This document shows positions 19,101-62,740 of a stretch of 64,000 nt of DNA, piece after piece. Numbering within the stretch: the stretch's first letter is position 1; every line of letters starts with the position of its first letter. Source of the DNA: Marsupella aquatica (Eukaryota > Plantae > Marchantiophyta); contig OZ316899.1 in the NCBI GenBank assembly GCA_973895155.1, positions 15,341,974 to 15,405,973 on the forward strand, written 5' to 3'. A program made the position numbers and the translations under genes. Under the pieces are notes generated by a model. That model saw only the letters and a list, made by a program, of their open reading frames with translations, was not told the DNA's origin and did not search any database.

Positions 19101-19203
19101 GTACCACCATCAAGATGACGACGCCGAGAGTGATGTTTGCAAGGACGCTTCACAATTAAGCAGGGAGCTATGTGAAGCCGCCGGTACGGCGGTTAATGAG
19201 TGA
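13193..19203 (+). pseudogene. gag-pol of family B (in-frame TAG at 16526-16528, frameshift near 17090)
   Basis: Retrotrans gag, Zn knuckles, protease VDGGAG, RT FIDD, RH DVS/TDH, integrase WGIDYIGP; reading frame ends inside the 3' LTR. Confidence 0.95.
19158..19167 (+). promoter_or_regulatory. PPT of family B
   Basis: AAGCAGGGAG just before the 3' LTR. Confidence 0.65.
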
Positions 19204-25900: not shown

Positions 25901-26512
25901 GCAAGTTTTTAGTGCACCAACAGGACTGGGATCAAGTAGTTAAAGAAGCTCTCGGTTAGTTATACTGTGACCCTTGTGTATATTCATGTTTCCTCATACC
26001 TAAGAGATGAATAGAGTTGGCCTCACGGCTTAGTTCGCAGATCTTGTATATGAGAAGTACTATTTGTATGGCAAGTGCATGGTATAACTCAGTCAGAAGG
26101 AGTCATTTTGCTATTTGTGTGTCGCATTAACCTGTTTGAAGATTGCCCACATCAACCAAGAAGGGAGTAAGCAAGGTAGTAAGAGTTGGATGTGTCGAGC
26201 TGAGAGAGGTCTTAGCGGCTTACCCAAGCCAGTTGGGGATCATTCCGGCGGTGGAATCCAAACATACCTAATGGAAAACCAAGAGAGGAGGACAAGGGAA
26301 GGCCTAGAATAGGCCGGCTACGTATCTCATGACCCGATGAAGGATCTGTCTAGTATATGTGAGTAAAATGTTAATAGTAATAGTAGTATAAGGAAGTTAG
26401 CAGCGTCCCATGCCGCTAAGCCGCGAAATTGGCCTCGCCAAGAGCGAAACCTGCGGGAATCGGCTTGTGCATAGGTGTTTCTTGGGTTTAGGGAGCCATG
26501 GGACGCACCACA
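22972..26512 (+). repeat. LTR of family D, 5' part missing
   Basis: 24481-26512 matches the solo LTR at about 55087-57144; ends GCACCACA. Confidence 0.85.
22973..25607 (+). pseudogene. LTR-encoded ORF of family D (same domain as B LTR ORF plus long coiled coil), decayed
   Basis: FGLPMG..VDTR..FPGPSTKNGFFQNTCTNPHIGEMINFLRVTMHCNLPRAEIGKAQV aligns with B FGLPEG..VESR..FPSEGAVDNGFVMKTCLIPEIAERLEFQRYALHMMEPRGEISAAQV. Confidence 0.75.
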
Positions 26513-26554: not shown

Positions 26555-29500
26555 CTATTGTTCCTGCATCAACTTAGAGAAGCTTCGTAAGCCGATGGAA
26601 TGTGTATGGTCTTTATGGATAGCCGGTGGTAGTGATTTTGTAAACATATCTACGTGATTCAGCTGGCTCGCTATCCATTTAACGGTAATGCTGTCACCTT
26701 GCTGCTTGTGTGTGAAAAAGAATTTTGGAGCGATGTGCTTCGTCTTATCGCCCTTAATGAAACCTGCCTGTATTTGGTCCACACAAGGCCTGTTATCTTT
26801 GTAGATCGGTGTGGGCGATGTTAGTTTAGTTGTACCTGTGTGTTTGCCAATGTGGTTAAGCACATTCTTGAGCCAGATGCACTCCCTGCTTGCTTTGTAT
26901 AGCGCTATGATCTCCGAGTGGTTTGAGGATGTCGTTGTTAATGTTTGTTTGCTGCTTTTCCAGGAGATCGCCGTTGTTCCAATCATAAACACGTATCCCG
27001 TCTGCAATTTTGCATCCTGCGGATCTGATAGATAGCCCGCGTCCGCATAACCTGTTAATGTGTTGTCTGTATTTGCAGGGTAAAACAGTCCCATGTCAAT
27101 TGTGCCCTTAAGGTATCGTAAGATCCTTGTAATGCCATTCCAATGGCAAATGGTTGGCTGTGCGCTGTGATGTGCTAAGAGGTTAACTGCGAATGCGATG
27201 TCAGGACGGGTCTGACTGGCAAGGAACATGAGGACGCCTATGGCAGATAGGTATGGCTTGTCTGGACCAAGTAGTGGTTTGCTTTCATCTCTTTTCCGAA
27301 ACATGTCTTCATGTTTATCGAGTGATCTTATGTCCATCGGGGATTTGACTGCATGAGCCTTTTGCATATGAAATTGCGGTAATATGCGCTATGTATACGT
27401 GGTTTGATGAAGTAGTATGCCTCTTGGTAAATGTTTGAGCTGGAGGCCAAGGCAAAATGTAGTTTGCCCTAAATCATGCATTTTGAAGACTCGTTTGAGT
27501 AATTTGATGATTTCCTGCATTATTTGGCTGGTACCAAATAGGTTTAGGTCATCCACATAGATGGCAATTATAATGAATTCTTGGCCTTCTCTCTTAAGGA
27601 AGATGCATGGAGCAATATCTTGATTTTGGAAACCCATGGCGAGCATTTCAGCTTGGAATCGCTTGTACCAAGTTCGGCCACTCTGCTTCAGGCCATACAT
27701 GGACCTGAGCACTTGCATAGCATATCGTATTCTGGCTTGAAGAGCCTTAGTTTTAGGGTTTAGGGTTTAGGGTCTACCCTTGCTCATGTGGGGTTTCAAT
27801 TTTATACTCTGTGAGATACGTTGTAGTATCTCTTGATTTGAGTGGTCAAACATAGTGCCCTCTGGTTTGTGTGTTGTCGTGGGTAGTTTCTCCCCCTGAC
27901 AGTGTGCTTCCTCCCTGTTAATTAATTCTGGTGGAGCTTCCATATGGATTGTCGTGTCTAAGTGGCCGTATAAATATGCTGTTACAATATCTAACTGATG
28001 CTGTGATGCAGTGAGAAGGCTATCAAGTATTGGTAAGTAATTACATCCATAACGGGTGAGTAGGTGAGATTGTAGTCTCTGCCTGGTATTTGAGTAAAGC
28101 CCTTTGCTACTAGCCGTGCTTTATAGCATACTACCTCCTCCTGTGCATTTCTTTTTAATAAAGGTCCACTTGTATCCTGTCAAGTGGATGTCTGGCCTAG
28201 TGTGATCGAGCCAAATACTTGTCTGGAGATCAGGGAGTCGAGTTCCTGATTGATGGCTTTCTCCCACTCCGGCCAGTCGGATTGTCTCTGTGCTTCTTTC
28301 ACCGTCAGTGGGTCCGGTGTGTCTTCTTTTATTTGTTGTGCTATTGTATATGCAAATGTTTTGTCTGGGAAGGTACTCTTTCTATCCCATATATTGCCAA
28401 TTATATTATAATTGATGGCGATTTCTTCGTTTGTTTCGGTAACAGGTTGGTTCAGTATAATGTGGTCGTTGTTTATTGCTGCAGGAGTGGGTGTAGTTTG
28501 GGCTGAGGGCACTTGACACCTCTGCCGTGGTTGCTTGTCTGTTGCCCCGGGTGGTCTTCCCCGTTTGGCCCTTGGTGCCGTGTATTTGGCTGGTTGTTTT
28601 GTCATCTGTATACGTGATGGGTGTTTGCTGCGGGTATGTGCGATCTTGTCACTTTTGCTGCATCTGCGAATGAATCTGGTAACTGCTCCATCATTCTTGT
28701 AAGGTGGAGTAGTCTTTGTACTTTGCTGTTGGCTTGGCCTGTTCTCGGGTCATTCTAGAACTCAGATTGCGTCTGCCAATTGAGTTCTGTATTGTCGTCT
28801 TTGTCTTGTTGTGATCTATCTTCTAGGCTTGGGAAAGTGCTCGCGTAGAAGTGGCAGTCCATGAATCTGGCTTTAAACACGTTTGTCGTTGTTGGTTCCA
28901 GGTATCTGATGATGGAGGTGGAGTCTAGGCCCACATAGATGCCCATTTGTCTCTGTGGGCCTATTTTGGTTCTCTTTGGGCCCATAATCGGAACTAGGAC
29001 CTGACACCCAAATGTTCTCAGGTGGGAGACGTCGGGGATGTGTCCAAATGCTAAGTGGTGTGGAGAGGTAGAATTGAATGATGATGGTCGGTAACTGATG
29101 AGTGTAGTTGCGTGTAGTATGGCATGGCCCCATGCCGAAAGTGGTAGGTTGGTTTGCATAAGGAGTGGTCAAGCTATGGTTTGTAGCCTTTTGATGAGGG
29201 ATTCAGCGATCCCATTCTGAAAATGGACGTGGGCGACCGGATATTGTATCTCTATGCCGGCTGATTCGTAGAACTCTTCAAAGGTCTTGGCGGTAAATTC
29301 TCCAGCATTATCTACTTGAAGAGTTCTTATTGGAAAGTTGGGGAATTGAGCTTTGAGTCTCAGTATGTGCGCCAGGAGTCGGGGGAATACCATGTTTCTC
29401 GTGGATAATAGTGAGACTCTTGACCATTTAGATGATGCACAGATAATGGCCAAGAAGAAGCGGAATGGTCCGCTTGTGGGTTCAATTGGACCGCACACAT

Positions 29501-30279: not shown

Positions 30280-33200
30280 CTATTGTAATGAGGGGTCCAA
30301 ATCCTCTACTACAACTACACTTGGCTTGTCTTGAACAATGGATCGTGAGCGAGGGATGTAAGGCATAACAATGGACCACTCTGGGTCATTCGGATAACGA
30401 AGATAGAAAGATTGCTCCAAATGATGGGGAAATGCAAATGGATCTGAGGTTCTCCAATTGGAACTAATGACACTAGTTGCACTGGTCGTCAATCGTGTGA
30501 ACCCACATGCATCTTCCTCACAGGTCCAATTATGGCCAACAAGATTCATCCAAAACCATTTGCACTTGAACACCACCTCCTCCAAGGTTGTATGGGCATG
30601 ATAATTTACGATAAGAATCTCCTCTATCTTCCCATAGTGGGCCACAGTTGAACGTATTGGATTCCGGTCAGAAGTACTACTTTGTGACTCTTGGGTGAAC
30701 CACCCCATCACCCCACAATCTTGTGTTGTTGCTCTCTTCATATCAAGATGTTGGATTCGAAAATGCCTCCCCTTTGACCACATGGCTGTTCGAGTCGTGA
30801 CCGTGAGTAATGGACCATGAACAAGGGTGCGCATGTCATTGGTGACCTTCGGAAAGTGCAAAACACTCTCACCCTGACCCACCAAGGCATCAATCTCTGT
30901 CAACTTCTCCTTCATATATGGGAGAAACTTGGGGAAGAGGCGTGGCCAACGACTATTACTCTTCTCCTCCTCATAAAATGCAGTCCACTCCCCTGAAATC
31001 TCTGGTGAGTTATACAACATGAATGTGGTGAGTTGCAGACATTCAGCAGAGCCTAGTAGTTGTTCTCCCTTTGCTCCAGTGAGTCTATCCTCATAATCTG
31101 CCTCTCGTGCTGACTCATCTATCCAACCCCTTGGAGCATTTGGATCAAGTGTAGCCACAATGTTCGTACAATAGAACATACTCTCTGCTCCAAGGTGACG
31201 TTCGGCAAGGCTACCTTCCACCCTAGCACGGTTTGATACATATGATTTCATGACTCCCATGAATCGCTCTACCCAATACATCCAACGACAATGTACTGGG
31301 CCAGCAATGGCTACTTCATGCACTAGATGTACAAGAAAATGAACTTGACCATCAAAGAAGGAAGGAGGGAGTGCTCGCTCCAACTTGCACACAACCTCCA
31401 CTCCAAATACCTCCATGGCAGCAATCTCTCCCTCGTTGACCTCCTTTTGACAAACCCATCTCAACAATCTACCCAATGACCAAAGTGCATCCCGAAGATC
31501 CTCGCTGCCCAATCCAATAATAGCAACTGGAATAACATGCTGCAATAGACGATGATAATCGTGGGTCTTCAAGAAAGCTGGCCATTTTGGAGAGTCATCT
31601 CCACCAAATGCCTTGCGAAGATTGGCACCATACCCTGTAGGAAACCACATTGACCCTATCCGCTTGCAAAACTCTATTCGCTCACTCCTTGTGAAAACCC
31701 ATGGGGGATGGATAGTAAGGGGAGGGTCAGGGTCCATAGATGGCCAAAAACCATGAAGGCCATGCATCCCCATCCCCTCACAACTCTCTCTCCAATTGTT
31801 GTTTTTCTCTCCATATAGATGGCGGATCAATGACCTCCTAACATTCCCCTCAATATGCATAGGGTCCAATAGATGATTTATCGGCATGTGTTCCCAATAT
31901 GGAAGTTGTGCCAATGCAGACAAACGGGTCATGCCACATCTAGCCAAGGGTAATGGGTCATCTGGATCAGTCACCCTCTCCCATACCTCCTTCCAATATA
32001 TTGGGTCCTTCGGTAAAGGCTGAGGTCTTGTGTCTGGCTGGCCCTCATCCGTGTCATACAAAAATGGATCATACCTCCAGTCATGCCCCTCAGGAAGATA
32101 CTTTGTGTGACCAATGTAAACTATCTTCCGCAGGGTGGTAGACTTTGGGCGCGCCACTCCCTCCAAGTCTGGTCCACAAGTCGGGCAAGCACGATATCCA
32201 GAAGTTTGCAAGCCAGAAATATATCCAAACCCTTCACAAACAATGGTCACAAATTAAAACCCATTAAGTTTTGAAACCAAACCAAAGGGAACAAAATAAA
32301 CAGAACGATATATATATATGGGTAGCTGCACAAGCCATACTTAATTTATAAAGAGTTGGGTACCTGGAAGATCATGCATGGTCCACATAAGAATGGCTTT
32401 GAGCTGAAACTCACGGGGTAAGCCCCCTATATGCACTCGACCATCATAGCAATCCACTCCCCCCCAAAGTTTCTGTAGCTCCTCAATCAACGGTTGCAAG
32501 TATACATCAATCTTCTTCACTTGCTTAGGGCCAGGAATAATCATAGATAGGAGCAAATGACCCTTCTTCATGGCCATCCATGGTGGGATGTTGTAGCTAG
32601 TGAGGACTACTGGCCATACAGAGTATGGTTTGGCCTTGACGGCCAGTGCAAATGGGCTAATGCCGTTTGATGCCAAACCAAGGCGAACATGACGAGGGTC
32701 AGTCTTGAACTCACCCCAACGCTCTTCCACAAATCTGTTTGCAGGAGAGTCAACCATCATGCGCATGGTTGGATCCTGAGTAGTGTTTGAACGGTGTTGG
32801 GAGTGCCATACCATATACTTAGCCAACTCTGCGCATCGAAACTGGTGATGCAAACGAGGAATAAGGGGAAAGTACCTCATAACCTTTTGAGGTACTCTTC
32901 CTATCAACATATCCTCACGATATCTTGGCGCGTTGCACACAGGACATGTAAGAGCATTTGAGTGCTCCTTCCTGAACAAAACACAATCATTCACACAAGC
33001 ATGTATGACCTCATACTTGAGGCCTATGGACTTCAACACTTTCTTCGCCTCTTTCCATGATGCTGGCAAGTTGTTCCCCTCTGGTAACATACGATCATGC
33101 AATGTCCTGAAAATATCATCAAGAAGCAAGTTGCTTGCTCCATGTCTTTGCTGCAAGTTCAGTAATAACATGATTGCTGAGAGACAAGATAATCTAGACC

Positions 33201-35017
33201 CCTCAAAAAGACAAGTCCGTGCATGCTCTTGAGCCTCCTCCCACTGGTGCGAGTGTGGATTCCGTGAAGGAGTAGGCACGAGGAGGAGGTAAGTCAATGT
33301 CCTCCCAGTCACCTGGGTCATGATCACCCCGGGGATCACCCTCATCTGCATCCATGAATTGGTGCATCAACTCATCCATAGCCCGGTCCTCATCCACTCT
33401 TTCTTGGGTAGCATTAGGTAGTTCATGTGGAATGTCCATATCCTCAAAAGGTTGACCCCCTTGCCTACCATCCATGGCCTGAAGGGGATGTCGCACAGCT
33501 CGTGATAATACCTCAATATCTGGCTGAACAAATGCATTCTATCATACACAAAAGAAAACAATGAGAATGATATAAGTCCAGGTCTCTCAACCAACAATTG
33601 AGACATCCATATATGAATGAGTCAAAAGACTCCATAGCTCTTGAAACCACTTAGAGAATGACTCAAGTAATAGTTTTATAAAAGTGAACACATACACATG
33701 TTTGTATGTGCTATGAAGGACGACACCGTATGGCCATCTTAGGCACGTTCCAATCATAGTCACAAAAGAGTTCCTCACCAACCCTAATAGTCGTAATGGC
33801 TATAGTCATAACATGGTCATCCATATGCTTGACATAGTAAGGTGGTGGCGGTGCCCCAAAAATCTGAACCCACTCTACATTTGGTTGAAGTCCTCGTCCT
33901 CTCCCTTTGGTACTATTGATATACCCAGCGATGTTATCACATCGCACAGGATCACCATCAATCATCCTACAATGCCAAGGCCTCTTGAGGACCTCATCCG
34001 GATCGGAATCCATTTGCAATGCATACACTCCCCATGATGGTTGTTGCCGCAAAATAATGTTCCAATTCTTGGCAGTGTATATAGGGCCAATGTAAGGAAA
34101 TAAGTGCTCCCCATCATAACCTCTTCGCCATGGCTTTGGATGGACCACAATGTCCTCCAAAGCAAATAACCCAAATCCTACATCAACAAGGGAAGATGAC
34201 TGCACTATCCAATGACGGCTCCATATCTCTATAGGGGCATTAGTGGGTATGCCTTGAGGGATTTTGAATATCTCAGACGAGAAGTCCTTCACAAGAGGCA
34301 ACGCCTTTCCAGTGAGATATGACAATCCCAACCTACCCTCCACTACCACATAACCCTCACCTGGCTTCATCATAGGCGGACCTACCAAGTTTGGGTCTTG
34401 AGACTCACGAGTGCCCAATGGTTTGTAATGTCTCCTATGCCTATGGGAGCATGGGCGGGTGTGTAAAACCCTAGATGGAGGTACCTCCAGGTCACCTTGC
34501 TCAATGTCCTCCACCCTTGCTACAGGTACACTCCCGCCCTCACCACTGGGGCGCGGGGTAGGAGGAGGGGGTGTAGATGTTGATGCAAGCATCCGTCTTG
34601 CACTAGCCAAGAATGTGTCTAGCCATAGCTCTTTAGAGATCAATGGAGGAGGGGGCCTACGGGGCACCTATTCATTCAAAAAAAATCCAAAATTAATAAA
34701 TATATGATGATAGTGGCCATGATTTAAGTGGCAAATTATGTTTCCTTCAAAATGTGCGGGGTGAGAGTATGGGGTGCATACCTGGCGAGCTGAATGTCCT
34801 GGTAAATCAGGTTGGTGTTGCCCATAATTCTCAATATGCTCAATACACTCCCAAGCTTGACGAACCACCATTCCCTTACATCGCACACACCAACATGGAA
34901 TGGGGCGTAGAGGAGGAGGAGGTTGATGCGGCCTCGGAGGGGGGGGGGAGGAACGTCCCCCTCAGAAGATGACGAGTCCGAGTCAGAATCTGACTCGGAA
35001 CTCCCAGAATTTGACAT
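30280..35017 (-). pseudogene. CACTA TnpD-like transposase; predicted exons 35017-34782, 33523-32364, 32231-30280; frameshifts near 34945 and 33245
   Basis: IPCWCVRC..HI..YG (transposase-associated Zn-like), IHACVNDCVLF, YSVWPV, WTMHDLP|GFG..ACPTC, LLDPMHIE, KTHDYH, GPVHCRWMYWVER, VFKCKWF; GT-AG introns in phase. Confidence 0.9.
33711..34667 (-). CDS. SET-domain (lysine methyltransferase-like) exon inside the CACTA transposase gene
   Basis: GFGLFALEDI, FPYIGPIY, IDG..NIAGYINS, PNV, IRVGEELFCDY; open for 318 codons; preceded by a phase-0 AG acceptor. Confidence 0.8.
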   Translation of the reverse strand: MPRRPPPPLISKELWLDTFLASARRMLASTSTPPPPTPRPSGEGGSVPVARVEDIEQGDLEVPPSRVLHTRPCSHRHRRHYKPLGTRESQDPNLVGPPMMKPGEGYVVVEGRLGLSYLTGKALPLVKDFSSEIFKIPQGIPTNAPIEIWSRHWIVQSSSLVDVGFGLFALEDIVVHPKPWRRGYDGEHLFPYIGPIYTAKNWNIILRQQPSWGVYALQMDSDPDEVLKRPWHCRMIDGDPVRCDNIAGYINSTKGRGRGLQPNVEWVQIFGAPPPPYYVKHMDDHVMTIAITTIRVGEELFCDYDWNVPKMAIRCRPS

Positions 35018-35613: not shown

Positions 35614-35639
35614 TTTAGGGTTTAGGGTTTAGGGTTTAG
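35614..35639 (+). repeat. Telomeric-type repeat (TTTAGGG)3+ in the CACTA divergent promoter region
   Basis: TTTAGGGTTTAGGGTTTAGGGTTTAG. Confidence 0.85.
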
Positions 35640-37157: not shown

Positions 37158-40100
37158 TCAGTCATAAACTTCATCCTCTGATTCATCAGAGATGTCACTA
37201 CTACTAGGATCGCTACTGGTCTCCCTCTCCGTGGACTCGGCAGACTCATCTAAATACTGACGGACTGTCCCCGCCTCATTGTCGATAAACCTTGAACAAT
37301 CCAGATATCTTCGAGCACCTCTCATGGACCGAAGTCCTTTCGATTCCCAAGTCAAGATAACAGGATCTTCATCAACCTGCCTCGCCGATGTCTCAGCATA
37401 GCACGGAAGAGTAAAAGGCTTCTCAGGAGTAACCACAATGGACTCCTGGACTTCCCTCCGAAGACGAAATCTCTCCTCAGAAAACCAATCCACCCTCCTA
37501 TCACTGACGCAACCACCGACATCAGTTGACGAAGAGCAACAAAATAAAGAAAACAAAAGAAACCAAATAGGGAGTCCGACATCAGAAGAGGCCAAGTACT
37601 TTACTCCAGGTCGAATTTGTCTTTCTCGCTTGAAGGCCCAGCCTGTTCATCCCCTGGAATCGTGAACTCATCATCTGACCCAGCGTCTTGATTAACCTTG
37701 GCTGGTTGATCCCTAATCTGCTTTGCCTTGCTCGAATGCCTCGCCAGAACACTGTTTAAAGTTTTTTCTGCACAGCAATGGAGAATGTCCCTGTCTTCAA
37801 CACCGACAACAAAACTCCCGGAGAATTCTTCGGCAGAAAACGAGCTACCGTCACACACAGTCCAGTCAAGGACTATGTCTTTGGGTTTTGTGAGGAATTC
37901 CATCACGGCTTGCATGAACCCAATTGAAAGCCTTTTCGATCCAGCAACAGCCGCTTCTGGACAGGGGTCAGTCTTAGGGTAACAAACACTCAACATTGAC
38001 TTATGTCTTGCATCTTCCGAAGACGTCAATGGAACATACGCTGGGTCTTTAGGAATCTTTGCACTAAATTCCACCCGACAAAAAACATCCAGGGTGAGAG
38101 TGCACACCTGCATAAAAACCAAAATACATCAGAAACAATGCTAACTTTGTTAGCGAGCTTGCTAGCATTAACTTAGTCGGAAAATAGAAAATTAACACCT
38201 AAACAAGATATGTTTGGTAGCTGAAAATTATAATTTTGTTAGCGACATCGCTAGCATTAAAACTCTCAAGAAATTTAAGGGATAACTACCTCAATATCCA
38301 TATCTGCCCTCCATAAAGGGGTGGACAACAAAACGGTATATTGCTGCACATGTTTGAATTTGTTTTTTTGCTCAACTGCCGTAAATATTTGCCTCATGTG
38401 ATTGAAGTCTGAGCTGTGCAAGACAACAACATATCCGTCGTCTGAAAGCATTGGTCTCATCACTCCAAAAAAATAATATGGGAGTTTCTCGCTCCAAACA
38501 TTCCAAGACGGAACCTGTTTGTCTGTAACGCTTGTTCTATGCCCAGTTGGAAGAGAAATGAATCCCAAATGTGCTCCAATCCCAGCATAAGGCTTTCCAT
38601 TAATTACGACATGGTTCGGGCACTCTACGCTCTTCGACATCCCAGTAATCCATCGATCTCCATCTCCCATCCAAGATGGCCTCACTTTACTTACGCTAAT
38701 TGAGTTTGCAGTATCGGTCAAATTGCTACGAGCCAGGAAATGTCGCTGCCCATCCATCTTCAAACCACACATCCGAGCAACACCTTGAGCAACTGAAACT
38801 TCCTCATCGTCCGAATCTGAAAGAATCTGGATGTTCCGCTTCCGTTTCAAACGTTTTATACTTCCTAAATCCACTGCGCTCTTTGTTGTGACTTCGGCAT
38901 CTGGGGACTGAGGTTCCTCACCATCATCTGCTCCACTCTTCAAACTCTCAGAAGCCGCTCCCTTCCTCCTCTCTGTGAAGCAGAAGACATTAGTGTCTGT
39001 ATATTTGACACACATCCGGACTTAAAAATAAAAAGTAACATACAATTAACAGACTTACTTGGCTTTCCGGAAATCTGGGACCCATCTTTGGATGTGTCCT
39101 TCAATGCTCCTTTTCTTGGCTTCCGTGCTTGACTCCTATCCACTATGGTAGCTACACCAAGACAAGCTTTTTCCATCGCCTCGCAACCACCAACTTCAGC
39201 ATCAGTGGGTGCCAATTTGGACTCGGAGATGTAAGATTCCGGAAGGAATCCTTGATTGATCATGTGAAGAGCTGCTTTCTCTGCAGTGTCAAATGTCACA
39301 GACCATTTGTCCGAGTCCAAATACCATGGACAATGAAGAACCTCCCACTCGCTCAATCTCCTCGGAGCTTCACTTCCCTCGCAAGGAAACATACAATATT
39401 CCCCAAACTTATCACTTGTAGGGTCCTCTTTAACCCCGACTATCCATGGGGAGAAACAGGTTGGGTAGGACCACCAGTAAAATTTGTCTGCTACTTCTTT
39501 GTCTACAAAAAATCGATACGTGTATCTCTTCGCTCTCCTCCGAAACAATGTAATGTCTACCTTCTCTCCTGTCTTGGGTGGCCAAATCTGCTTGAAAAAA
39601 CAAGTTTTCACACGAGTTTGGAAATTCTCAAAATCCTCCTCAATGTCAAGGATTAGCGAAGCTTTCGTCTTCTCTGAAGACGTAAGGATCCTTGACTCAG
39701 GGACAGTAGGCATTACCTCAGAAACAATTTCAGACATGAGGGAAGACAAAATTGACTCGGCTTGCTCCCACACTGCCCAATGATGAAGCCAAAGCTTAGT
39801 CTCACCATCTGAGAATTGACCTGGATGAAAGAATTTTTTCCGAAGCTCAGGATGACACTGTGCCTCTAGGAGTGTACATCGGAGCTCTGGGGATAAAGAG
39901 GTCACACCAATGAACAATCGAGCTTGATCAAGACCACAAGAAACATTTCCCCTGCCTTTGTCATCTGTTCTCTGGGCCTCCTTTCTCTCGTTCTCGCAGT
40001 AGTTATGCATTTCGACACATTTCTTGAAAAAGTCTCCAAACTCAGGATTTAGTAATGGACCGATCTTTGGAACTTTCACATTCCAATCAGCAAGTTGTTC

Positions 40101-41217
40101 TTTCATCATGTCACGCATTGCTAAGTCCTGTGCAGCCTTGGAAAGGGGCTCGCCTTGAGCCTCCTTAAGAGCAAATTTCTTCTTAAGGTCCTCGGTCTGC
40201 GATGCAATGTTAGCAGCGGATAGAATATAAGTGCAGGCATCCAGCGTCATGTTCTTCGAATACCATGCGGCCTTCCGCACATTGGCCATCTTTTGCTGGA
40301 AAAGTTTGTAATTCTCAGCGTCGATGATATCTTTGTAAACGGATAAGTCATTGTTCAGAATCTTCTGGACGCGTTCAGCCTCCAAAACCCAGGAATTCTC
40401 TACATGACATTGAGTTAACCTGCCACAACATGCCTCATGTTAGCGAGATCGCTAGCTGAAAGTGACCTGGTAAAAATGAAATTTCAGAACTATCTTATCA
40501 TGAGAAGTCCCACCTGTTCAATGCGTGCATAGCCGACTCGATCTGAACGAAAGAGTTCTTTCCACCCTTAAAGATCTTGCAGACCACTCGAGGATGGTAC
40601 TTAATATCATCCGGATGTTCCTCCGCCAGTTGGCTCCATGAATACAATCGGTGGTTTCCATCGAAAACACAAAACATTTTGTCCTTGAGGATCTGGAAAG
40701 AAACATGAGAATCACATTCGCGCTCAAACTCCTCGTTTTGCAACACCCAAATATCATCCCAAGTTTCGCGGATGGCATCTGTACAGATCTGGATTTCTCC
40801 ATCCTCGTTTGTCATCTGAACGTAAAATCGAGGCGCATCCTTGATGTAACCCTGCGTTTTGAACTCGGACTTCAATGTGTCTATCGCAGTGGAATCCTTC
40901 TGCAGAGACCGGACAATCTACATGTTTCTCATCCGGCACAGAGGAATTCGGGGGGGAGCCAATGCAAATCCGAACTCATTCACTCCAAACGAGTGAAGAT
41001 GACGGTTTATGACAACCGTGTAAGGTTCCAAAGCGCTCGGATCAAACACAGGAGCAACTACGTCTACCGCTGTCACCATCTTGGGCCGCCTTGGAGTCTT
41101 CAATCCCGCTACAAGCACTTTCTTGTTCGCTGTGGACCTAGTTTCTCTCCTTGTCGACTCCCTAGACTGAAACGATCCTCTCAAAGAAATACTCTCTGGA
41201 GACAACGATGACTCCAT
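37158..41217 (-). pseudogene. ParB/Srx-like N-terminal domain plus N4/N6 DNA-methyltransferase-fold protein, 1198 codons; exons 41217-40514, 40419-39059, 38972-38290, 38107-37605, 37503-37158; one internal TAG at 40918-40920
   Basis: Four GT-AG introns all preserve phase; IPLCRMRNM*IVRSL..LKSEFKTQGY..VFDGNHRL; HLGFISLPTG..MLSDDGYVVV..MEFLTKPKDIVLDWTVCDGSSFSA..VVGVED. Confidence 0.75.
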
Positions 41218-44200
41218 GAAATAAAACCCTTTGGAGAAGAGTGCTCGAGCCCGGAGACTGCAGCGGCTGCACGCGTCAAAAACGTCCACAGAGCACCTCC
41301 TTTCGGAGAATTAGGACAGCCGTACAAACTGCTACGAACTCCCTCCAAAGCCTTATAGAGTTACGATAGTGAATACTGACAACGATCGACAGTACGATGT
41401 AAGGAATAACAGAAATCTCCTGGCAGGGACCACTAGTTGTACTTTTTGGAAAACATGAAGAACAACCTTCACGACCGATAATCTTATCCAGACAAAATAC
41501 TCCAGGTGTCCCGTGTAATTTGTACCGTTGACATTATGGTACCCGTTGACTATTCCCAACGGAATCCTAACGGTAAACTTCCTCAAAAATCAGTTTGACT
41601 TTTTGGCTAGCGAGATCGCTGGCATAAACTCAATGACACAGGTATCCTTAAAAGAGTTGAAATCAACGGTTTTCTTGCCATAAAACTATCAAAACCAAGC
41701 TAGCGAGATCACTAGCATGGGAGACGTCCCTATACGTTGAGTAAAAGACAAAATAACGGTAAAATCAACGGGAACCGACTGACAATCTGTTCGGATTGTT
41801 GTTTCCGTTGGGAAAAACCCAGTTTTGGTCCTGCAAATAGGATTCGTATGGGAGATTCAAAACATAGTGGTTGTATTTTTGTATGCTAAGAAGAGATGAT
41901 GTCGATGAATTCCAAGGTGGTTTTGGAGCGTAGAATGACGGGAGATGTGGTGGTACTCCCAAGTGCCCCTGACTCATCGGAGGTTAGGGTGACAGAGTCA
42001 TTCCTTGCAACTCATTTTGGAATTCCAAAAGATGACCTTGTCATGAAGTTGTTTGAGTTGTATTCTCAAAATGGGCCACGGAGTCACGAGTTGAGAGAGG
42101 ACAGTAGTACTTCCGAGAAGGTCTGGACGCTGAAGGTTGGATCTTGTGTCAAGGTTCTGTCCAGTAAAGATGGTTTTCCTGATGTCATTTTGGAACCCAT
42201 GGAATTAGATCCCGTTCATCAAACTCCTGTGATTGATCTTGGGACGCCTCCCAAAGACAGAGCTCCCAAGGTCATTGAAATATCTCCAGAGAGTATAAGG
42301 CAAGACACATCTTGTGGTTCGATGAAGTCACGAGATGGTTCCGAACCCGAAGGGTTAGCGACAAATTTGATTGAAAGGACTGGGGATAGCATGACCACAG
42401 TGTATCGGATGAGTGCCTATGACGCTTTTCTCAATATCAGTGGAGCGAGTGAACTTGCACAATTTAGAAGAGGGAATCAATGGAATGAATGTCAGGTTTC
42501 GACTCTGCCATCGACATACAATGGTAACGTTGTTTTTGAACTTCCTCCAGTCGAGTGGGGCGGGAGGGGAGGAGGTCTCCAAGATATGGATCGAGAGAAG
42601 GACGGCTATCCTTGGACGAGACTAGTGACTACATCTGCAAATTTGAAGCCAAGGTTTCATTGGGCTGTGTCGAAAGTTCGTTGCGCTAGAATTCTTGAAT
42701 GCCATAATTTGGGTTGCCGGAAGTTGAAACATACTGAGTGAAAAATGACTGCGCTTTCAGAGGGAAAGGGTTGCTGACTGACATCTTTCGTCTTGGAGAG
42801 CAAGTGAGTGAGGGAGGACTTTCTGTGGCTTCTGTGAAGAGAGGCCTCTCTGTATTCGAGAATGCCCGGCAAAACTGTTGTATGTGTACCCTAAGCAAGG
42901 TTTGGAGAGTCACATTTCAATGCATATGTCCAGATTGGCTGTGCATATGGGATTCCACGATCACCCTGTTTGGAAGGGAAAATCTCGTTCTGCGAGAAAA
43001 ACAGCGGAAGATGTGGTTTTAGGGGTCCATCGGTTGAATCCAGTCTCAACTCCCGCACGTCTGAGAAACCAGTCAATTGGGAACCTTGTCTCGCTATTGC
43101 ATCCAGAATCATCGGCTCAGTTGTCGAGAGAAGAACAACAAGAAATTTGGAGTTTGATCGGAGTAGTTTCTACCGCTCCAAAGTTCCAAGCTATTCTTCG
43201 GAGTGTGAAGATGGATAATCCTAAAAAAGGAGAACTTGACTCACTTCGTGAAATGCAATCACGTAACAATTTCCCTTTCGTGCAGAGGTACCTATTTCCC
43301 GATCAAGGAAACAGAAATGATCGAGCGCATGTATTCAAAATGAGTACAAATGGTCCTGGATCGGGTGTGGAAATTTTGAGGAGCATGGAGGCTGGAGGAG
43401 CATTGGAAGGTTCGTGGGTCAGTTTTGACGTGATGCATCGTATCACTAGTGGATGGTTGACCTTCAGCGCACACATGTATGACCATAATTACCGCGCTCT
43501 GTGTACAATTTTCACTTGGGAGTTGAGAGCCGAAGACACAGAGTCGCTTGAAACTACGTGGAGGTTAATGGTAGATGTCGCATCCAAGAATGGAGTGCAT
43601 AATCCCATTATTGGAGGATTCATAGCAGACAATGCGGAGGCTGGCTGGATTTTTGTGAGAAGGGTATTTTTTGGAGGTGTCAGAAATCCTCTGAAAGAGC
43701 ATAGTGATGCTTTCCATCTCTCTCAATCCCTCAGAAGACACACTTTGGAGGGGATCAAGGAGGGGTGTCATGCGGAGCACTATAAGATGTGGGAGAAGTT
43801 AAGAATTGCTCCAACATACGTCGAAGCATATCGTATCGCCGAAGACATTCAAAAATGGTGGAAAGAGGGGAATTGTCACCCTTCCAAGCTTAAATCACTA
43901 CAAGGGTGGATTTCATGGTGGGTTGTGCGGTGGAGACAATGGGGTAACTTTATTCGTGTGGTGAGTAACGGTGAATTCTTTCTGATGAGTTTAAGCTAGC
44001 GAGATCGCTAGCAATAAAATTTCTTTTCGTAAATGTATTTTGGTCACCGATTGAAACATTAGACTGTCTCAAAATAGACATATCGCTAGTGAATACAAGT
44101 GTTAACTCTGCTCATTTTTCAGACGCAAACTGCGAAGGAGTCTGCTCTGATGCCAAACTGTGCGGGAGCTGAATCTGCTCACGCATCAATGCGTTCCTGC

Positions 44201-46026
44201 CAGCCGAAGAAGAAAATTGGTTTGATTGAAGCCTATGAAGTTGACCAGAATCGAGCAGCTGGACAGATTGCAGCGTTCACTGCATACTTGGAAGGGTGTC
44301 ACCGTGGGAATGGTCCTACAATATTTGAGTTGGCCTTCAGAAATGCAGATACAATGGGGTCTATGGATGCCTATGAGAAGGCATCCAATCTACTATTTGA
44401 ATCATCTGGAAAATATGAGTTCTATAGAACTGTGCCTTTACATGGAGATCTTAGAACAACGTCAGGGAAACGGAAGGGTAGTGCTTCTGCTTCTATTCAT
44501 GAAAACGATTCTCATAGACATGATAAGATATTGCGCACAGTGGCGTCGCGGTCTAGTTTGAAAAGAAGAAATCTTTACACAGAATTTGGTAACTTCAGCG
44601 GTGCTTCTGATATTGGTGGACCTTCAGACTTTCCTGGCGATGGAGACAACCCCACTTGCCATGGACCTTCTCTTCCTCGTGAAGTTATAAATATATTAGA
44701 TGATGGTGAAGAACTACGTTGGAGAAATACCACAGCCTCAAAATAATCGGGATGAAATTCAGGATGCACCCCGAAGGATCCCTTTTGTTGAAGAGGTTGA
44801 TGTGACATATGGGACCTGGCACTTGAGGCGGAGTGGAAAAGGGAGTGGACCTGTTTGCAATGGACGAGTGGACCGAAGTGTGTTTGGAAGAGATGAGTGC
44901 AGGAATCTCATCAAAGAAACTGGAATGAAGGCATTCCGGGCTGGAGTGGTTGGTGTTGCGATTCACGGATTGAGGTTGTCATCTCCACATCGTCAGCTTC
45001 TATACTTCTGTCCGAATAATAGGTGCCATAAAACAGGTGGCAAAAGGACTCTTGCCCAGCTTCCGGAACCACCTGAGGCATTGCAAGTCCAGCGTGGGAC
45101 CAGGCTGACCCCAACAGAGATTGACTTTCTTCTTCGAAATGGGATTGAAATCAGAGGATTATCATACTCTGATCGAGCACCGATTGGGTCGTTCTCCTCT
45201 CCAAATCGTGTTGACCTCCGAATTGATGTGAACTCCTTCCCAGAAAGAGTTGACATTGGTATTCCAAACCGTAGATTCAAGACCCGGAATGGGAAAGGCG
45301 TTCGTCAACGTTTCCAGAACACCCCGGAGCTTCTCACGCATTTGATCTGCGACTGACAAACATATGAGAGTCATTGGAAGTGAGAAGATATGCCTCGAAA
45401 ATGGGTGGGGATGGCAATATCTTATCGTCACTCACGAGACAGATTCTAAAATTGCACACAAGTACTGGGTCCAAGTGTGTTGCTTTCCTTCTTGCTCATT
45501 TGATGACTTCTACAAGAGACACACGAGAGGAAGACCCTATATGTCTTGTAAACACCTCCTCTGGGTGTACTTAAACAAGTTCTCACTGAATCTAGACAGA
45601 GACGATCTTGTGAAGCAGCCAATTCTGACTGTTGCTGAAGTAAGGAGTTTGATTCCGTTGCAGTGTAGTTGACTTAATCTCTATTATCCGTTGAGGTGAA
45701 CGTTTCAGCGTCCCTAATTTTGTCGCCTTTTTGGTTTTCAGAACAGAGGAAAGTCCTCCACCTCACTAATTATATTGTGTATGCAATGTTAGCGAGGGTC
45801 TAGTACTATTCTATACGTATCGGCAATAGTGTTTATTTTTCTAGCGATGTCTCTGGCATTAAACCCGTAAAGTAAAGTTTTAGGTTTCCCGTAAACGGTT
45901 TCTTTTTGACCAAGTTCTACATAACGTAGAGTTCAATAACTCATGTATTTTAATTGTTTTTGGGATATACATTCGAGAAAACAAACCATTTTAGTCACGC
46001 ATAGTTTTACTAGCGATGTCGCTAGC
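38149..46026. repeat. Dispersed 18-bp palindrome GYTAGCGA-NN-TCGCTAGC, eight near-full copies
   Basis: 38149-38166, 38238-38255, 40439-40456, 41606-41623, 41699-41716, 43995-44012, 45840-45857, 46009-46026; partial sites near 36829, 36846, 42354, 44083, 45788. Confidence 0.9.
41896..45672 (+). pseudogene. Mutator-like transposase with GCM-like Zn DNA-binding domain and C-terminal SWIM finger; intron 43961-44122; stop at 42739 and frameshifts near 42820, 44715, 45340
   Basis: DGYPW..C..LECHNLGC..CGFC..C..C..HMGFHDHP; FDVMHR, FIADNA, DAFHL, GAESAH; YWVQV..PSCS.DDF..CKHLLWV. Confidence 0.75.
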
Positions 46027-47026: not shown

Positions 47027-49383
47027 TGTCACGCGATTGACATGGGTCTTAACACCAAAGACGTCACTATGGGTGCCAAAACCATCTCCTTGTACCTGAG
47101 GATCACGAAGGGATGTTGTGAAGGCCGGTAAACACCAATTTATGCCCTTAACACCAGACTATCATAGCAAAGCTCTATCACACATCACCCAAGCTCAATC
47201 CCAAGGAACCAAGGTTGGGGATCAGATCTGCGCTCATGATAGTTCTGGTGAGAAGGGGTCTTCATATCGGGCCCGTACACACAGGGCCTAGCGCTACGGT
47301 GCGCATAGGTCTATACGTATGCTTACTGTCATAGGTATGTTTCTATTCCGCCGCCGGAATGTACCCATAAACCAGTGACTCCTGACTGATTCCCAGCTTA
47401 GGGACTTCTAAGCCATTGCCCCACCACTCTGCCATTCCACTCTCAGCAATCAGAGCTGTGACAGCCCTCACCCAACCCACTTCAATGCACCCGGTACACC
47501 TCTCAGTGGCGCTGCTAGTCTCATCATACACTCAGATTGCCTCACACACACACACACATCCATGAGAGAAATGAGGCCTGAAAGAAAAACTCAATTGGAT
47601 TCAAAGATGTGCACAATAGTTCACTGAGAACACTTGATCCGAACACTAGGCCCGAAGGCTGTCTCCTCCAGATTGCGACGTGCTTGCCCTGCAAGCCCCG
47701 TGCTTGCCATGCAAGCTCAATCCTGAACTCAACCTCCTTCACTGCACTTCATTCTTGGGGGCACATACAGATCTCACACCTCCAATTCAGAACGTCAAGT
47801 TACGCATGCATAGTTGACTCGACTTCAAAGCTGGTACCAGGCCTAACGGCGATCTACCCCAGACTGCAATGAGGCCCGGCCTCACGCTTGCCCTGCAAGC
47901 TCAGCTCTGGCCATAGATCCCTTAGTGCTCTCCACCAGACAAAGGCCGGGACTCCCCATGGGTCACGTAGCCTTGCCAGACTGAACTGTAAATGCTCCTC
48001 CTGCTGCCCCTTACTCAGTACCTCAGCCTCCCTAATGTGCCCACTGCAAATCGAATTGAAATCCTCCCCACAGTTTACAATCACCAATACATCACCTATC
48101 ACCAAGGCTCTGTATCGGGGGAAAAGAACCCAGTTGTGCTGCCCACTAGAAAGAGCCACAATCCAGCTCGCAAACCTAGCAACCCGTTGTTGTGAAGCTT
48201 GGCTGATTACTCCCTGAGTAATAGCACAACCAAGCTCTCCCCAACACGCAGCGTCCAAGTCCAGCCTTGCTTGCACAGAGCTCCTCCCCGCTGCTCAGTC
48301 TAAGTGAGATCACACAACTGAAGTCCCCCCCCCTCTCTACCGGGGGGGCTGCTCTATATACTCTCATACTGAGCCCAAATGGCTGGGTACTACGCTGCTG
48401 GAGCCCCATCCCAGCCCTAACAGAGCCGCCACTATCTCTAACTACTGAACCCTAACTCGCCATTTTATTTCTATCTCGAATTGGCTATGTACTTCGGATT
48501 TGGCCCTCCTCCATGGTTTTTGCGAGCTTACGCCTCCTCTCCCGATTTCTGTATTCAACCATTTGCTGCGTGGATAGCAGCGTTTGAAGCGGCTTGAGCT
48601 CCTCTTTCCAATGAGGTCAATTATAGCCGATTTGGTCAAATACACAGAGAGTTATGCCCCCGCAACCGAGAGGGGGTACTCACTGCTGCGCTAACCCGAG
48701 TTACATAGCTAACCCGAGTTCGGCTAACCTAGCTATCCTATCTAACCCGAGTAGAGCTAACCCGTGGTCTCGGGTTAGGCCGCTACCCGCTATCCGCTAT
48801 CCGCTAACCTAGCCTAAGCTGAGCCCGAACCCGAGCTTACCTATGCTAACCTGAGCCCGAGTTTAGGCTAACCCGAGTTCAATCTAATCCGAACCTAGGT
48901 TAAGCCTAAGCTGAAGCTGTGCTGACCTGAGCTAAGCTGAAGCCGTGCTCACCTGAGCTAAGCTGAAGCCGTGCTTACCTGAGCTAAGCTGAAGCCGTGC
49001 TTACATAATCTAAGCCGTGGTCGAGCTTGGGTTAACCCGAATCTGAAGCCGAATCCGCTAATTCTGGCCATAAGTTAACCCGTCACACTAATCAGACCGT
49101 ATCTCTCTTAATACACCTCCGTTTCCCGAGTGTTTTATATCGATTTTACTCGCCTTGACCAGATCTTTCCAATGCTCTTTACAGATCCGGATTTGGTGAC
49201 ATATTGAAAGAAATATGGTCGTCGACCACCCGCGACATAGTTTTTATTTCCCTACTCTTAACGCCATGATTGCCCTTATTCTTGCCATCTTGCTAATTGT
49301 TATGTAATATCAATAGCTACTCCTTGCATACAGCAACCTACTTAATCAGATTACAAAATAAGGACCATGTCATTGGCGTCACA
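47027..49383 (-). mobile_element. Solo LTR (family E, 2357 bp)
   Basis: TGTCACGC...GCGTCACA with 5-bp TSD CTGGT; strand inferred from repeat-rich U3-like part and TATA-like sequence. Confidence 0.88.
48688..49040. repeat. Short tandem repeats in solo LTR E (AACCCGAG units; 26-bp CTGAAGCCGTGCTTACCTGAGCTAAG about x4)
   Basis: Directly visible. Confidence 0.85.
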
Positions 49384-52779: not shown

Positions 52780-54517
52780 TGCAAATTCCAAGTTACCCCA
52801 TCTACTTGCCTCACAAGTACCAAAATAAGTGTTAAACCACAGGTCTCCTGAAGGACACCATTAGCAGAACTCCATCGATGGCCATTTGCTTCTAAAACTC
52901 CAAGTATGAGATTTTTCATCATGTTGGGAATATGTCTCACATTCCTCAACGTTCTCACAGCACCATCAAACATCTGAAATCTTACAGATCCAAGTCCAAC
53001 AACTTGACATGGGATTCCATTTCCCATCAACACTGACCCGTTGGAAACCGTGTAAGAACTAAAAAACTCTCTCCTAGAGCAAATATGAAAAGTACATGCA
53101 CGATCTAGAATCCAGTCATCACTACCTGGATTTGACACTACGTTGAGAGCATAACCTTGGCATCACAATATGTCATCATCATCGAGTAAATCTACCTCAT
53201 GCAAGCTCGATGTCGCGTTAGCAGATGCAATAGGGTTCTTTACTCGACAATCCCTTTTCATGTGGCCAGACTTGCCACAATTCCAACATGCAAGAGGCTT
53301 CCTCTCTTGCGATTTCCCTTTGGATTTAGATCTCCCCCGTGATGTAGATCTAAATCTGTTCTGCCCATTTGTGCGTTGCGCTACTCTTCCACGGTTCACG
53401 TTCAGCGTAGTGCTAGAAGAAGATGTTGTCTGTGATTGACCCAGCTTCTTCTGAGCATCATCAAACAGTAAAGAGCTCACCACCTCATTATACAAAATGG
53501 ACTTCAGATCTCTGTACAAGAGCATCTGTTTCAAGCCCTGACATGACGGCGGTAAGGAGCTTAGCAAAAGCAAGGCCTTATCCTCATCTTCAACTCCTTT
53601 TCCCAGGTTTGACAGATCCACCGCTAGATTGTCAAACTCATCCAGGTGATCCTGCATCTTGCTCCCTTTCTTGAGCCTGAGGCTCATCAAGAGAGACTTC
53701 TTGTACAGTCGGTCAGACGCATCTTCTCGGTAGTACTTCTCTCTTAGAGCCTTGAACAGTGACGCGCAATTCGCATAATCATCCAATTGCTTGATGATTT
53801 GCGGCTTGAGATATAGCATCACTGCATTGACAGCAATCACCTGCTCCTGTCTCCATTGCTTCACAGAAATCTCCTCCTCTCCATCATACTGCTCTCGCGA
53901 AGAAAGCAGATGAGCTAAGCCCATGGCCGGGTATGGCACGCGTGACAATAAACAGGAAATAGGTTTACTGGTACCAGGAAAATTTTTCCTGTTACCAGCA
54001 AAAAGTTATTGTTACCAGGAAAAATAACCATGTCAAAATATTTTCTAAAAATTGAATATTTTCTGAAAATTGAATTTTATTTTTTATTTCCCCCCCCCCC
54101 AAAATGGTTTTTTTCCCCAAAAAAATTTTCAAAAAATTTTCAAAAAATTACCACTCATTTCCCTGTTACCAGTTTCTGATTTCTGTTACTGTTTGCTGTT
54201 TCCTGTTGTTTGTAAATACCCCCCATGGCCCTAAGGGCACCCTTCACTTGCTTCTCCCATAGCAAGTAATCAGTACGACCATCGTACTTCTCCACCTCAA
54301 ACTTCACTCCAAATCTAGCCATCTCCCTCTTCTTCCCTACTACCAACAGCTTTGGTAATAGTACAGCTTCCTCCACTGCACGCCGCACCGGTGATTGTAC
54401 CGGTGATACTAGTTCTTCCTCAAACGGTAGCAGCTCCTCCTCAGACTCTTCGTCTAATCGTCGCGATCCTGAAACTCCACCGACGCCAATTTTTCCAGTA
54501 TCCTCCGAGTCACTCAT
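52780..54517 (-). pseudogene. Tork-type gag and protease, interrupted by a MITE
   Basis: KFEVEKYDG..YLLW, DKALLLLSSLPPS, CWNCGKSGHMKRDC, WILDRACTFHIC. Confidence 0.9.
53929..54221. mobile_element. Mutator-type MITE (293 bp)
   Basis: 9-bp TSD CCCATGGCC (53920-28 and 54222-30); ends GGGTAT...ATACCC; removal restores ALRAMGLAHL. Confidence 0.88.
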
Positions 54518-62200: not shown

Positions 62201-62740
62201 GCTGGCCAATCTTTAATAAGGAACGCTGCTCTGATCCAATGGCACAAAACTCTTGTAGCAATGCAGCTTGGAATTGTGCCCATGTAGTCCCAGGTGGCAA
62301 CGAGTTGTACCATGGGCGAGCTTCTCCCCGCATCACTCCAGGGAGGATGGTTAGCTTAATGGCATCTTCCCTATTGGCCTTAGCAGTGGCTTCAAACTCA
62401 TCCAACCATTCATCCGGATCGTCCCCATGACCCTTTGAAAGGTCGATAATGAAACCGTGACCGTTGTGATATTTGTGGGAGAGCTTGGGCAGCGCGGACC
62501 ATAGCCGGAGGGGATGCTGCCATAGGTACCGGTGGCAGTGGTGGTGTTGGCCGTGGTGCAGTAGGGATTGGAGCAGGACCGGCTGGGCCGGACCCCAAAG
62601 GTCCCAGTGGTATGTTCATCCGTCGAGGCGATTGCAAATCCTCTGAGCTTGAAGATTTGGAGCTTGTTGTGGTTGCACTCTCTTGTTCGCTGGTCAATAT
62701 CCTCAAGTAAGCCGCTTGAGAATGAGTGATGGGCTTCTAC
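59212..62740 (-). pseudogene. Partial gag-pol of the reversed B copy
   Basis: ORF fragments closely similar to the 13193-16710 translation. Confidence 0.9.

Follow-up and report, generated by a model that had tools for sequence, protein, structure and literature searches.

A probable transposon accessory gene with ParB-like and methyltransferase folds, present as an inactivated copy in the liverwort Marsupella aquatica

Gene structure and relatives

We analyzed a minus-strand gene at positions 37158-41217 of a 64,000-nucleotide (nt) stretch of Marsupella aquatica contig OZ316899.1 (hereafter, the window). The gene is predicted to encode a ParB/sulfiredoxin (Srx) fold at its N-terminus and a beta-class methyltransferase fold at its C-terminus, and it lies head to head with a transposase-like gene among short non-coding palindromes. 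On balance, we favor reading it as the accessory gene of a liverwort two-gene, cut-and-paste transposon, present here in an inactivated copy, with a role in self-recognition that we infer from its domains and surroundings.

Six-frame reading of the minus strand revealed open pieces in shifting frames from 41310 down to 37161. Explicit placement of the junctions joined these pieces into a spliced model of 3597 nt – 1198 codons and a stop – that consists of five exons and four introns of 94, 86, 182 and 101 nt. All four introns are GT..AG, and their phases fit the open frames on either side. An earlier, sequence-only reading of this DNA had proposed the same five exons, four GT-AG introns and 1198 codons, which our placement reproduced exactly; the peptide strings that it cited were all found in the window translations, and the spliced model holds, as it had reported, a single in-frame stop, the TAG at 40918-40920 in exon 1.

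Exon 1 (40514-41217, 704 nt) carries the start codon, a basic N-terminal tail and the ParB/Srx-fold domain (approximately 41030-40514), within which IPLCRM (40947-40930) and VFDGNHRL (40668-40645) were located. Intron 1 (40420-40513, 94 nt, GT..AG) contains one copy of the palindrome described below, and its junction gives a Riccia-like spacing, AMHNLN.SSHATVQYDW in the window and AMHALN.LTQCHVENSW in Riccia. Exon 2 (39059-40419, 1361 nt) encodes a middle domain of about 450 residues and is followed by intron 2 (38973-39058, 86 nt, GTAAGT..CAG). Exon 3 (38290-38972, 683 nt) encodes a basic/acidic linker that leads into the methyltransferase fold, of which it covers the first half: strand 4 with the motif IV site and strand 5 with LSDDG. 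Intron 3 (38108-38289, 182 nt, GT..AG) contains two palindrome copies. Exon 4 (37605-38107, 503 nt) supplies the second half of the fold, with motifs X, I and II, and an acidic tail; removal of intron 4 (37504-37604, 101 nt, GTAAAG..CAG) eliminates the TAA at which the exon 4 frame would otherwise end. Exon 5 (37158-37503, 346 nt including the stop) encodes a C-terminal extension, TPEK..LP.YAE, and then an acidic, serine-rich tail. All of these exons and introns are on the minus strand.

Single window exons or natural relatives, rather than the joined 1198-codon protein, served as queries in our searches. When exon 2 was compared by phmmer with 1.84 billion representative proteins, 114 homologues were recovered (best E 1e-111), and the named relatives among them come from liverworts only, Riccia sorocarpa and Calypogeia fissa. 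The set of relatives also includes metagenome contigs, one of which, L002, is the closest relative. The Riccia protein P0117 (1207 amino acids) is collinear with exons 1b, 2, 3 and 4, with the first 123 residues of the window protein unmatched. Exon 1 is homologous to P0117 residues 187-322 and to loci L002-L008, and exon 5 is homologous to C-terminal extensions of Riccia P0127, P0130, P0131 and P0029. In the fetched DNA, L003, L004 (Calypogeia) and L005/L006 keep the complete set of five exons in unchanged order, L002 holds exons 1-4 and L001 (Riccia) holds exons 1b, 2, 4 and 5; exon 5 homologues lie 3' of exon 4 in L001 and L003-L006. Window exons and the relatives' loci share 28-56% identity. 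Because this collinear homology recurs in Riccia proteins and in five independent loci, the exon model is not a chance assembly.

Two lesions distinguish the window copy. One is the premature TAG, where exon 1 of the relatives' loci is open and without a stop. The sequence-only reading took this TAG to derive probably from CAG, a suggestion that found no support, since relatives have P, H, E or T at what is a variable position. The other lesion is a glycine-to-cysteine change in the loop that binds S-adenosylmethionine (SAM) in the methyltransferase fold. Because both are private to this copy, we regard it as a pseudogene, one that is, judging by these changes, recently inactivated; taken by itself, the locus is a dead copy of the ordinary sort. 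General decay was ruled out: the window copy deviates at 14 of 128 family-invariant positions (10.9%), and a leave-one-out control gave 6-28% for the other loci. Loci L005 and L006 are 99.9% identical and other pairs are too diverged, so the ratio of nonsynonymous to synonymous substitution was uninformative.

Domains of the encoded protein

For the N-terminal domain, we used AlphaFold, with a 21-sequence alignment, to model the product of exon 1 as it occurs naturally in L002, at 56% identity to the window. The model has a predicted local distance difference test score (pLDDT) above 90 across residues 80-240. The best 33 rows of a Foldseek search with this model are almost all Noc, ParB, KorB, PadC, Srx and SbnI (best probability 0.98, E 0.04). 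VIA, a search independent of Foldseek that covered 48,161 chains, returned 18 with Z of at least 2, and the first 13 all belong to the ParB/Srx superfamily: KorB (Z 7.9, root-mean-square deviation 2.7, 95 residues aligned), PadC (6.8), Arabidopsis Srx (6.4), pNOB8 ParB (6.2) and a serine kinase (6.0), followed at lower ranks, with Z down to 2.5, by Atu1540, SbnI, human Srx, SspE, Spo0J, BrxU, Osa and a Dnd protein.

Within this domain, DGNHRL (40645-40662, minus strand) corresponds to the ParB/Srx phosphate-loop motif of the GxxR or DGhHR type and is invariant in eight loci (the window, L001-L005, L007 and L008). Weak sequence hints from the window exons point the same way (ParB phrog_1033, E 0.015; TIGR03187 DGQHR, E 0.04). 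Neither ParB_N (PF02195) nor any other Pfam family matched the window exons or the full-length relatives at this domain, the profile of the N-terminal and middle alignment gave 0 matches against PDB sequences, and tblastn of exon 1b against phages gave none. A galectin-8 match of exon 1b (E 0.012) was discarded as chance, being at odds with all other evidence. Given the exclusive match list and the invariant DGNHRL, the predicted assignment to the ParB/sulfiredoxin fold is firm, though the Z values are middling, and the ParB/Srx signature that the sequence-only reading had recognized at the N-terminus is thus borne out.

We also observed a likeness to a fungal family. Among 30 ESM Atlas neighbors of Riccia P0117 residues 165-335, fungal DUF3723 clusters come first with 14 (score 0.95-0.96), and ParB_N and phage DUF6551 rank behind them. 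Starship giant transposons carry DUF3723 as an unexplained accessory gene. Our literature search for a pairing of DUF3723 with ParB found none, and we treat the likeness as a lead only.

The middle domain, encoded by exon 2, had no match in Pfam, PHROG, NCBIfam or PDB sequences; its roughly 450 residues are, as far as sequence comparison indicates, specific to this family.

Several lines of evidence identify the C-terminal domain. The Pfam family PF01555 (N6_N4_Mtase) matches Riccia P0124 at 31.7 bits and P0130 at 27.0 bits, above the gathering cut-off of 26.7, and falls below it on eight other relatives (19-26.4 bits), with six members and L005 at 23-26 bits. Exon 4 of the window has weak matches to an NCBIfam DNA methyltransferase (E 0.022) and, in PDB, to DpnA/M1.HpyAVI aligned at motif I. 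A family profile compared with all PDB sequences recovered DpnA/M1.HpyAVI (E 0.005) and CcrM, the latter as two collinear segments; a viral fusion-glycoprotein row from the same search (E 1.1) was taken as chance. With the AlphaFold model of Riccia P0118 as query, Foldseek gave CcrM as the best match (E 4e-7) and 75 matches at or below 1e-3, all of them amino-methyltransferases, including M1.HpyAVI, M.BceJIV, RsrI, MboIIA, MT-A70 enzymes and rotifer N4CMT; VIA gave Z of 8.1-8.6 with the same model. Bacterial N6_N4_Mtase proteins account for 25 of 30 ESM-Atlas neighbors, and the weak motif-I matches of P0118 in phages and plasmids (E 3e-3 to 7e-2) all fall inside annotated DNA methyltransferases. 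The Pfam, PDB-profile, Foldseek and ESM-Atlas results agree with the beta-class C-terminus and motif order described in the sequence-only reading: the fold is permuted, with motif IV first and motifs X, I and II last.

UniRef labels several Riccia members, among them P0115, P0117 and P0118, ‘trimethylguanosine synthase’; a further member is called ‘profilin’ and another ‘plant heme peroxidase’. Such names seem to be annotation artefacts that stem from transposon gene models which are fragmented or chimeric. We excluded the name trimethylguanosine synthase for the Riccia members, as the Pfam and fold searches indicate N6_N4 DNA methyltransferases.

We surveyed the catalytic and SAM-binding motifs of this domain across seven lineages, covering the window and the relatives' loci. 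At the place of motif IV, (D/N/S)PP(Y/F/W), the window has FISLPTG (38542-38562, minus strand), aligned with Riccia LYLDLPTG and with the ‘vDLIfaDPPY’ strand of CcrM and N6_N4 enzymes. The same strand reads FISLPT in the window, FIALPT in L002, FISLPN in L005, FIFLPN in Calypogeia L004, FICFPH in L003 and YLD[LM]P[ST] in Riccia. The resulting family consensus, [SADFC][LF]P[TNHS], has one constant proline, no aromatic residue and a variable amine-contacting position 1. Motif I behaves differently from motif IV. Every relative has a SAM loop of the form D[WCMF]xxGxGx[ST] (with GVG, GEG, GLG or GWG) and an acidic E or D after strand 2; in L002, a run of N at about 4740-4760 lies over the motif I codons, and its SAM loop was taken from a second alignment piece. 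The window copy alone has lost the first GxG glycine to C, its motif I reading DWTVCDGSS within the degenerate stretch DIVLDWTVCDGSS (37841-37879, minus strand), and it retains VGVED, part of the VVGVED just past that stretch.

Because the altered motif IV is seen across lineages, its loss is, on this alignment, old and family-wide; because the relatives keep GxG, the loss of motif I is private damage of the window copy. The degenerate motif IV noted in the sequence-only reading thus extends to all seven lineages, and its check of other copies comes out divided: (D/N/S)PP(aromatic) is absent family-wide, and the GxG loop that it also called degenerate is intact in relatives. Intact relatives probably retain SAM binding, given that they conserve GxG together with the acidic residue that follows strand 2. 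With a variable sequence in place of the (D/N/S)PP(aromatic) loop, classical exocyclic-amine base methylation by this protein would not be expected. A non-catalytic or non-classical methyltransferase domain is therefore the likelier state, and the degenerate motif IV fits the earlier suggestion of an inactive DNA binder rather than a methyl writer.

An alternative, which we consider improbable, is that the family encodes an active N6A/N4C methyltransferase whose ParB part binds the palindromes and which marks its own transposon, the window copy alone being dead. The fold, the beta-class order and the conserved GxG and acidic residue after strand 2 all suit an active enzyme, palindromes are typical methyltransferase targets, and a proposal of this kind has been published for Sola1-1_Ec32 of Ectocarpus (PMC12477816). 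Against it, across the seven lineages motif IV has S, A, F, C or D where the target amine is contacted and T, N, H or S in place of the aromatic residue, and the lack of conservation at position 1 speaks against a fixed catalytic role. We know of no active amino-methyltransferase with such a motif IV loop; METTL14, which has a comparable EPPL loop, is inactive.

The transposase-like neighbor and the palindromes

Divergent from the gene, a transposase-like neighbor occupies 41896-45669 on the plus strand, in pieces at 41896-42741, 42878-43999, 44099-44746, 44700-45356 and 45346-45669. The last of these pieces is homologous to Calypogeia L004 3561-3255 and makes the neighbor about 300 nt longer than the open reading frames (ORFs) first listed. 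Alignment of the neighbor with its homologues revealed conserved D, D and (C/D)xxH-type positions, as in several cut-and-paste transposase superfamilies, and a Cys/His region at the N-terminus. Sequence and profile searches with the window and Riccia proteins and ten homologues gave no Pfam or PDB match. The same head-to-head pairing with the accessory gene is found in Riccia L001 and Calypogeia L004, with 27-56% identity between neighbors.

In Riccia, 26 C-terminal fragments of the accessory gene are spread over many chromosomes, marking it as multi-copy. We consider it very likely that the gene is the accessory gene of a two-gene DNA transposon and that it carries ParB/Srx and methyltransferase folds. 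The sequence-only reading had instead described a long-domesticated module, which the Riccia copies and the conserved pairing contradict. A related alternative would make it a host gene long domesticated from a prokaryotic ParB-methyltransferase fusion, perhaps kin of the Marchantia sperm enzymes that produce N4-methylcytosine (4mC), and decaying here. Its spliceosomal introns, the lack of a close prokaryotic relative and the fact that liverworts own acquired N4C methyltransferases are in keeping with such an origin. It is nonetheless highly improbable in view of the dozens of paralogous fragments across many Riccia chromosomes, the constant pairing with a divergent transposase-like gene and palindromes of the same kind, the stop in the window copy, and the TSPPY that MpDN4MT1a/b retain.

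We identified a palindrome, GCTAGCGA-NN-TCGCTAGC (14-18 bp), that occurs 8 times in the window, where 0.08 occurrences are expected; a count of 8 was not attained in any of 100 shuffles. The copies, all of them non-coding, lie within 38149-46026. Two are in intron 3 (38149-38166 and 38238-38255), one is in intron 1 (40439-40456) and two are in the divergent intergenic region (41606-41623 and 41699-41716). A perfect copy lies in the gap between two coding pieces of the neighbor (43995-44012), and two more lie in its downstream flank (45840-45857, with 3 mismatches, and 46009-46026).

Palindromes with the core TARCGR-NN-YCGYTA recur in the introns, promoter region and flanks of related units, in lineage-specific forms that include TAGCGAG.CTCGCTA, TAACGG..CCGTTA and CCAGCGGA..TCCGCTGG. 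Calypogeia L004 has 15 copies of ATATTGCTAGCGAGCTCGCTAGCAATAT, and L003 has 20 copies of TAACGA-NN-TCGTTA, six of them in intron 1. L002 and L005 share TAACGG-NN-CCGTTA, which in L002 includes an array with 64-65 bp spacing. Riccia L001 has TCCAGCGGA..TCCGCTGGA in both flanks, spaced 66-69 bp apart, and TTCCGGCGAG..CTCGCCGGAA in the intergenic region. In blastn comparison with Calypogeia, similarity is confined to coding regions and palindromes.

Which of the two proteins reads these sites bears directly on the role of the accessory gene. We tentatively assign them to the accessory protein rather than the transposase, at somewhat less than even confidence. A rather unlikely alternative holds that the palindromes are sites of the transposase-like neighbor, comparable to the subterminal repeats of CACTA, hAT and Mutator elements, and that the accessory protein has another task, whether as a nuclease or clamp dependent on NTP, as a methyltransferase of RNA or protein, or as a decoy for the host methylation machinery. 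The flanking palindrome arrays of L001 and L002, whose copies are spaced 64-69 bp apart, do resemble subterminal transposase sites, the Cys/His region of the neighbor is possibly a DNA-binding zinc finger, and no helix-turn-helix emerged from the sequence searches with the ParB-like protein. Copies within introns and in the shared promoter region would, however, be unusual for transposase sites, and the placement is that seen for the dispersed operators of KorB and for accessory factors of the VANC type (PMC5735166). ParB-family proteins, moreover, typically read palindromes, and a report on red algae ties inverted-repeat arrays to a ParB-bearing accessory gene.

The rest of the window is a plant-like, repeat-rich nest of transposons. 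Ty3/gypsy polyprotein ORFs (gag, protease, reverse transcriptase, RNase H and integrase), a copia-type gag and further zinc-knuckle ORFs lie at 1480-6007, 13193-19203, 53163-53948 and 60546-62405. A CACTA-type transposase block (Transposase_21, DUF4218 and DUF4216; 30280-34667, minus strand) adjoins a SET-domain ORF (33711-34667), and plant-telomere-like (TTTAGGG)3 runs in direct orientation flank the CACTA/SET block (27752-27776 and 35614-35638). This block may have inserted beside or within the element that carries the ParB gene. The presence of a SET-bearing accessory gene beside a CACTA transposase recalls PAG2 of the red-algal Plavaka/EnSpm elements. A tandem repeat at 48906-49015 has 4.2 copies of a 26-nt unit, CTAAGCTGAAGCCGTGCTTACCTGAG, with 92% matches.

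We also observed a 35-nt inverted pair (26236-26270 and 47332-47366) with 86% complementarity, 21 kb apart; inspection revealed no target-site duplication at the pair. Its core, ATTCCGGCGG, is similar to the Riccia intergenic palindrome TTCCGGCGAG. The two repeats might be the termini of a larger composite element with both the CACTA block and the ParB unit inside.

Proposed role and comparison with known systems

In the reading that we favor – an accessory gene of a two-gene transposon, inactivated in the window – intact elements would encode a protein whose methyltransferase fold still binds SAM and does not methylate bases in the classical way. This protein would be the element's own sequence-specific recognition factor, acting on the dispersed palindromes, with the ParB-type domain as a nucleotide-dependent switch or dimerization module. 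In this way the protein may shelter the element from silencing, or help to assemble or regulate the transposition complex.

Several points weigh against this reading. The neighbor is called transposase-like only from motif reading and multi-copy synteny, and searches for element ends and a target-site duplication found neither. The window exons gave no significant match in Pfam, PHROG or NCBIfam, and the evidence for the folds was drawn from relatives with 35-56% identity. The AlphaFold model of P0118 is weak (mean pLDDT 56) and confident for residues 20-131 only, so the motif I half of the fold rests on sequence alignment; the VIA scores of both domains (Z 6-8.6) are middling by the tool's scale. 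A divergent catalytic loop is no proof of inactivity. No helix-turn-helix DNA-binding domain emerged from the profile and PDB-sequence searches, in which the middle domain had no match. Finally, subterminal and internal repeats are classically bound by transposase, and the palindromes may belong to the neighboring protein.

A bolder version of the favored reading, which we put forward as a long shot, is that liverwort transposons possess a eukaryotic counterpart of ParB/parS. The accessory protein would load on its own palindromes with a specificity that co-evolves by lineage, and would switch with nucleotide and SAM, without methyl transfer, to shield the element from silencing or organize its transposition. 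If this were true, the likeness of the N-terminal domain to DUF3723 of Starship elements would make self-recognition of this kind a cross-kingdom theme.

Among prokaryotic systems, KorB of plasmid RK2, ParB and Noc are the best structural matches of the N-terminal domain (KorB by Z, 7.9; Noc by probability, 0.98). These proteins read palindromes dispersed on a replicon, and their N-domain is a switch gated by cytidine triphosphate. The liverwort protein differs from them in having a DGNHR loop rather than GERRxR, and in being eukaryotic, intron-bearing and fused to a methyltransferase fold. That fold resembles CcrM, M1.HpyAVI/DpnA, M.RsrI, M.PvuII and the phage ParB-methyltransferase fusions (PF01555) in its architecture, in the order IV..X-I-II, in the GxG loop and in the acidic residue after strand 2. 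Unlike in these prokaryotic and phage beta-class enzymes, DPPY/SPPY is replaced and introns are present, and sequence similarity to phages and plasmids is left only at motif I.

Two eukaryotic enzyme groups belong to the same methyltransferase superfamily, Marchantia MpDN4MT1a/b and bdelloid N4CMT, and the latter is a structural match (E 5e-4, Z 7.8). Both keep TSPPY or SPPY and are active, single-function host genes, whereas the present family lacks the motif and is transposon-borne. Nothing connects the family to the Marchantia 4mC enzymes that the sequence-only reading mentioned, given that MpDN4MT1a/b keep TSPPY (the motif as quoted in the paper on these enzymes, not from sequence comparison). 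A review of eukaryotic adenine methylases lists no such land-plant family (PMC4738411), and our literature search for liverwort transposons with ParB found nothing relevant and no report from a land plant.

To our knowledge, transposon factors that recognize their own element and manage it epigenetically are known in detail only for VANC. The VANC anti-silencing proteins of Arabidopsis VANDAL (Mutator) elements (Nat Commun 2017, PMC5735166; EMBO Rep 2023, PMC10398659) are, like the protein described here, accessory proteins encoded next to the transposase and associated with short, element-specific non-coding motifs that differ between related families. They share no known domain with it; their motifs are short tandem repeats rather than palindromes, and the function proposed here is inferred.

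Closer parallels come from algae. In the red alga Bostrychia (bioRxiv 10.1101/2025.02.11.637652), PAG2 of Plavaka elements combines an N6A methylase with SET, and PAG3 combines ParB with a 2-oxoglutarate (2OG) oxygenase. These are likewise transposon accessory proteins with a ParB-like N-terminus and with inverted-repeat arrays beside the gene, and the same self-binding hypothesis has been raised for them. There, ParB and methylase reside in separate proteins with other partner domains; the liverwort protein unites the two around a novel middle domain. A survey of transposons in the brown alga Ectocarpus (Genome Biol 2025, PMC12477816), which refers to Iyer et al. 2011 and Petroll et al. 2025, describes a 1104-amino-acid protein with ParB-like and DNA-methyltransferase domains opposite the transposase of Sola1-1_Ec32, and its authors propose that this protein binds and modifies its own element. 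The two proteins agree in length (about 1100-1200 amino acids), in their N-terminal ParB-like and N4C/N6A-type domains, and in their position on the strand opposite the transposase in a large DNA transposon. They differ in that the host here is a liverwort and not an alga and, by description, in that motif IV is lost family-wide here and the algal protein is a predicted methylator.

ParB-methyltransferase accessory genes are thus already published for algal transposons, where they have so far been mentioned briefly. Our analysis argues for caution in annotating this family as DNA methylases or, as UniRef does in Riccia, as trimethylguanosine synthases. The lineage-specific palindrome in the non-coding parts of the unit, introns included, offers a testable protein-site pair for the distinction of self from non-self by a transposon. 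What is new relative to the algal systems is the occurrence of the same design in a land-plant host, the liverworts, together with the family-wide loss of the catalytic loop while the SAM loop is kept.

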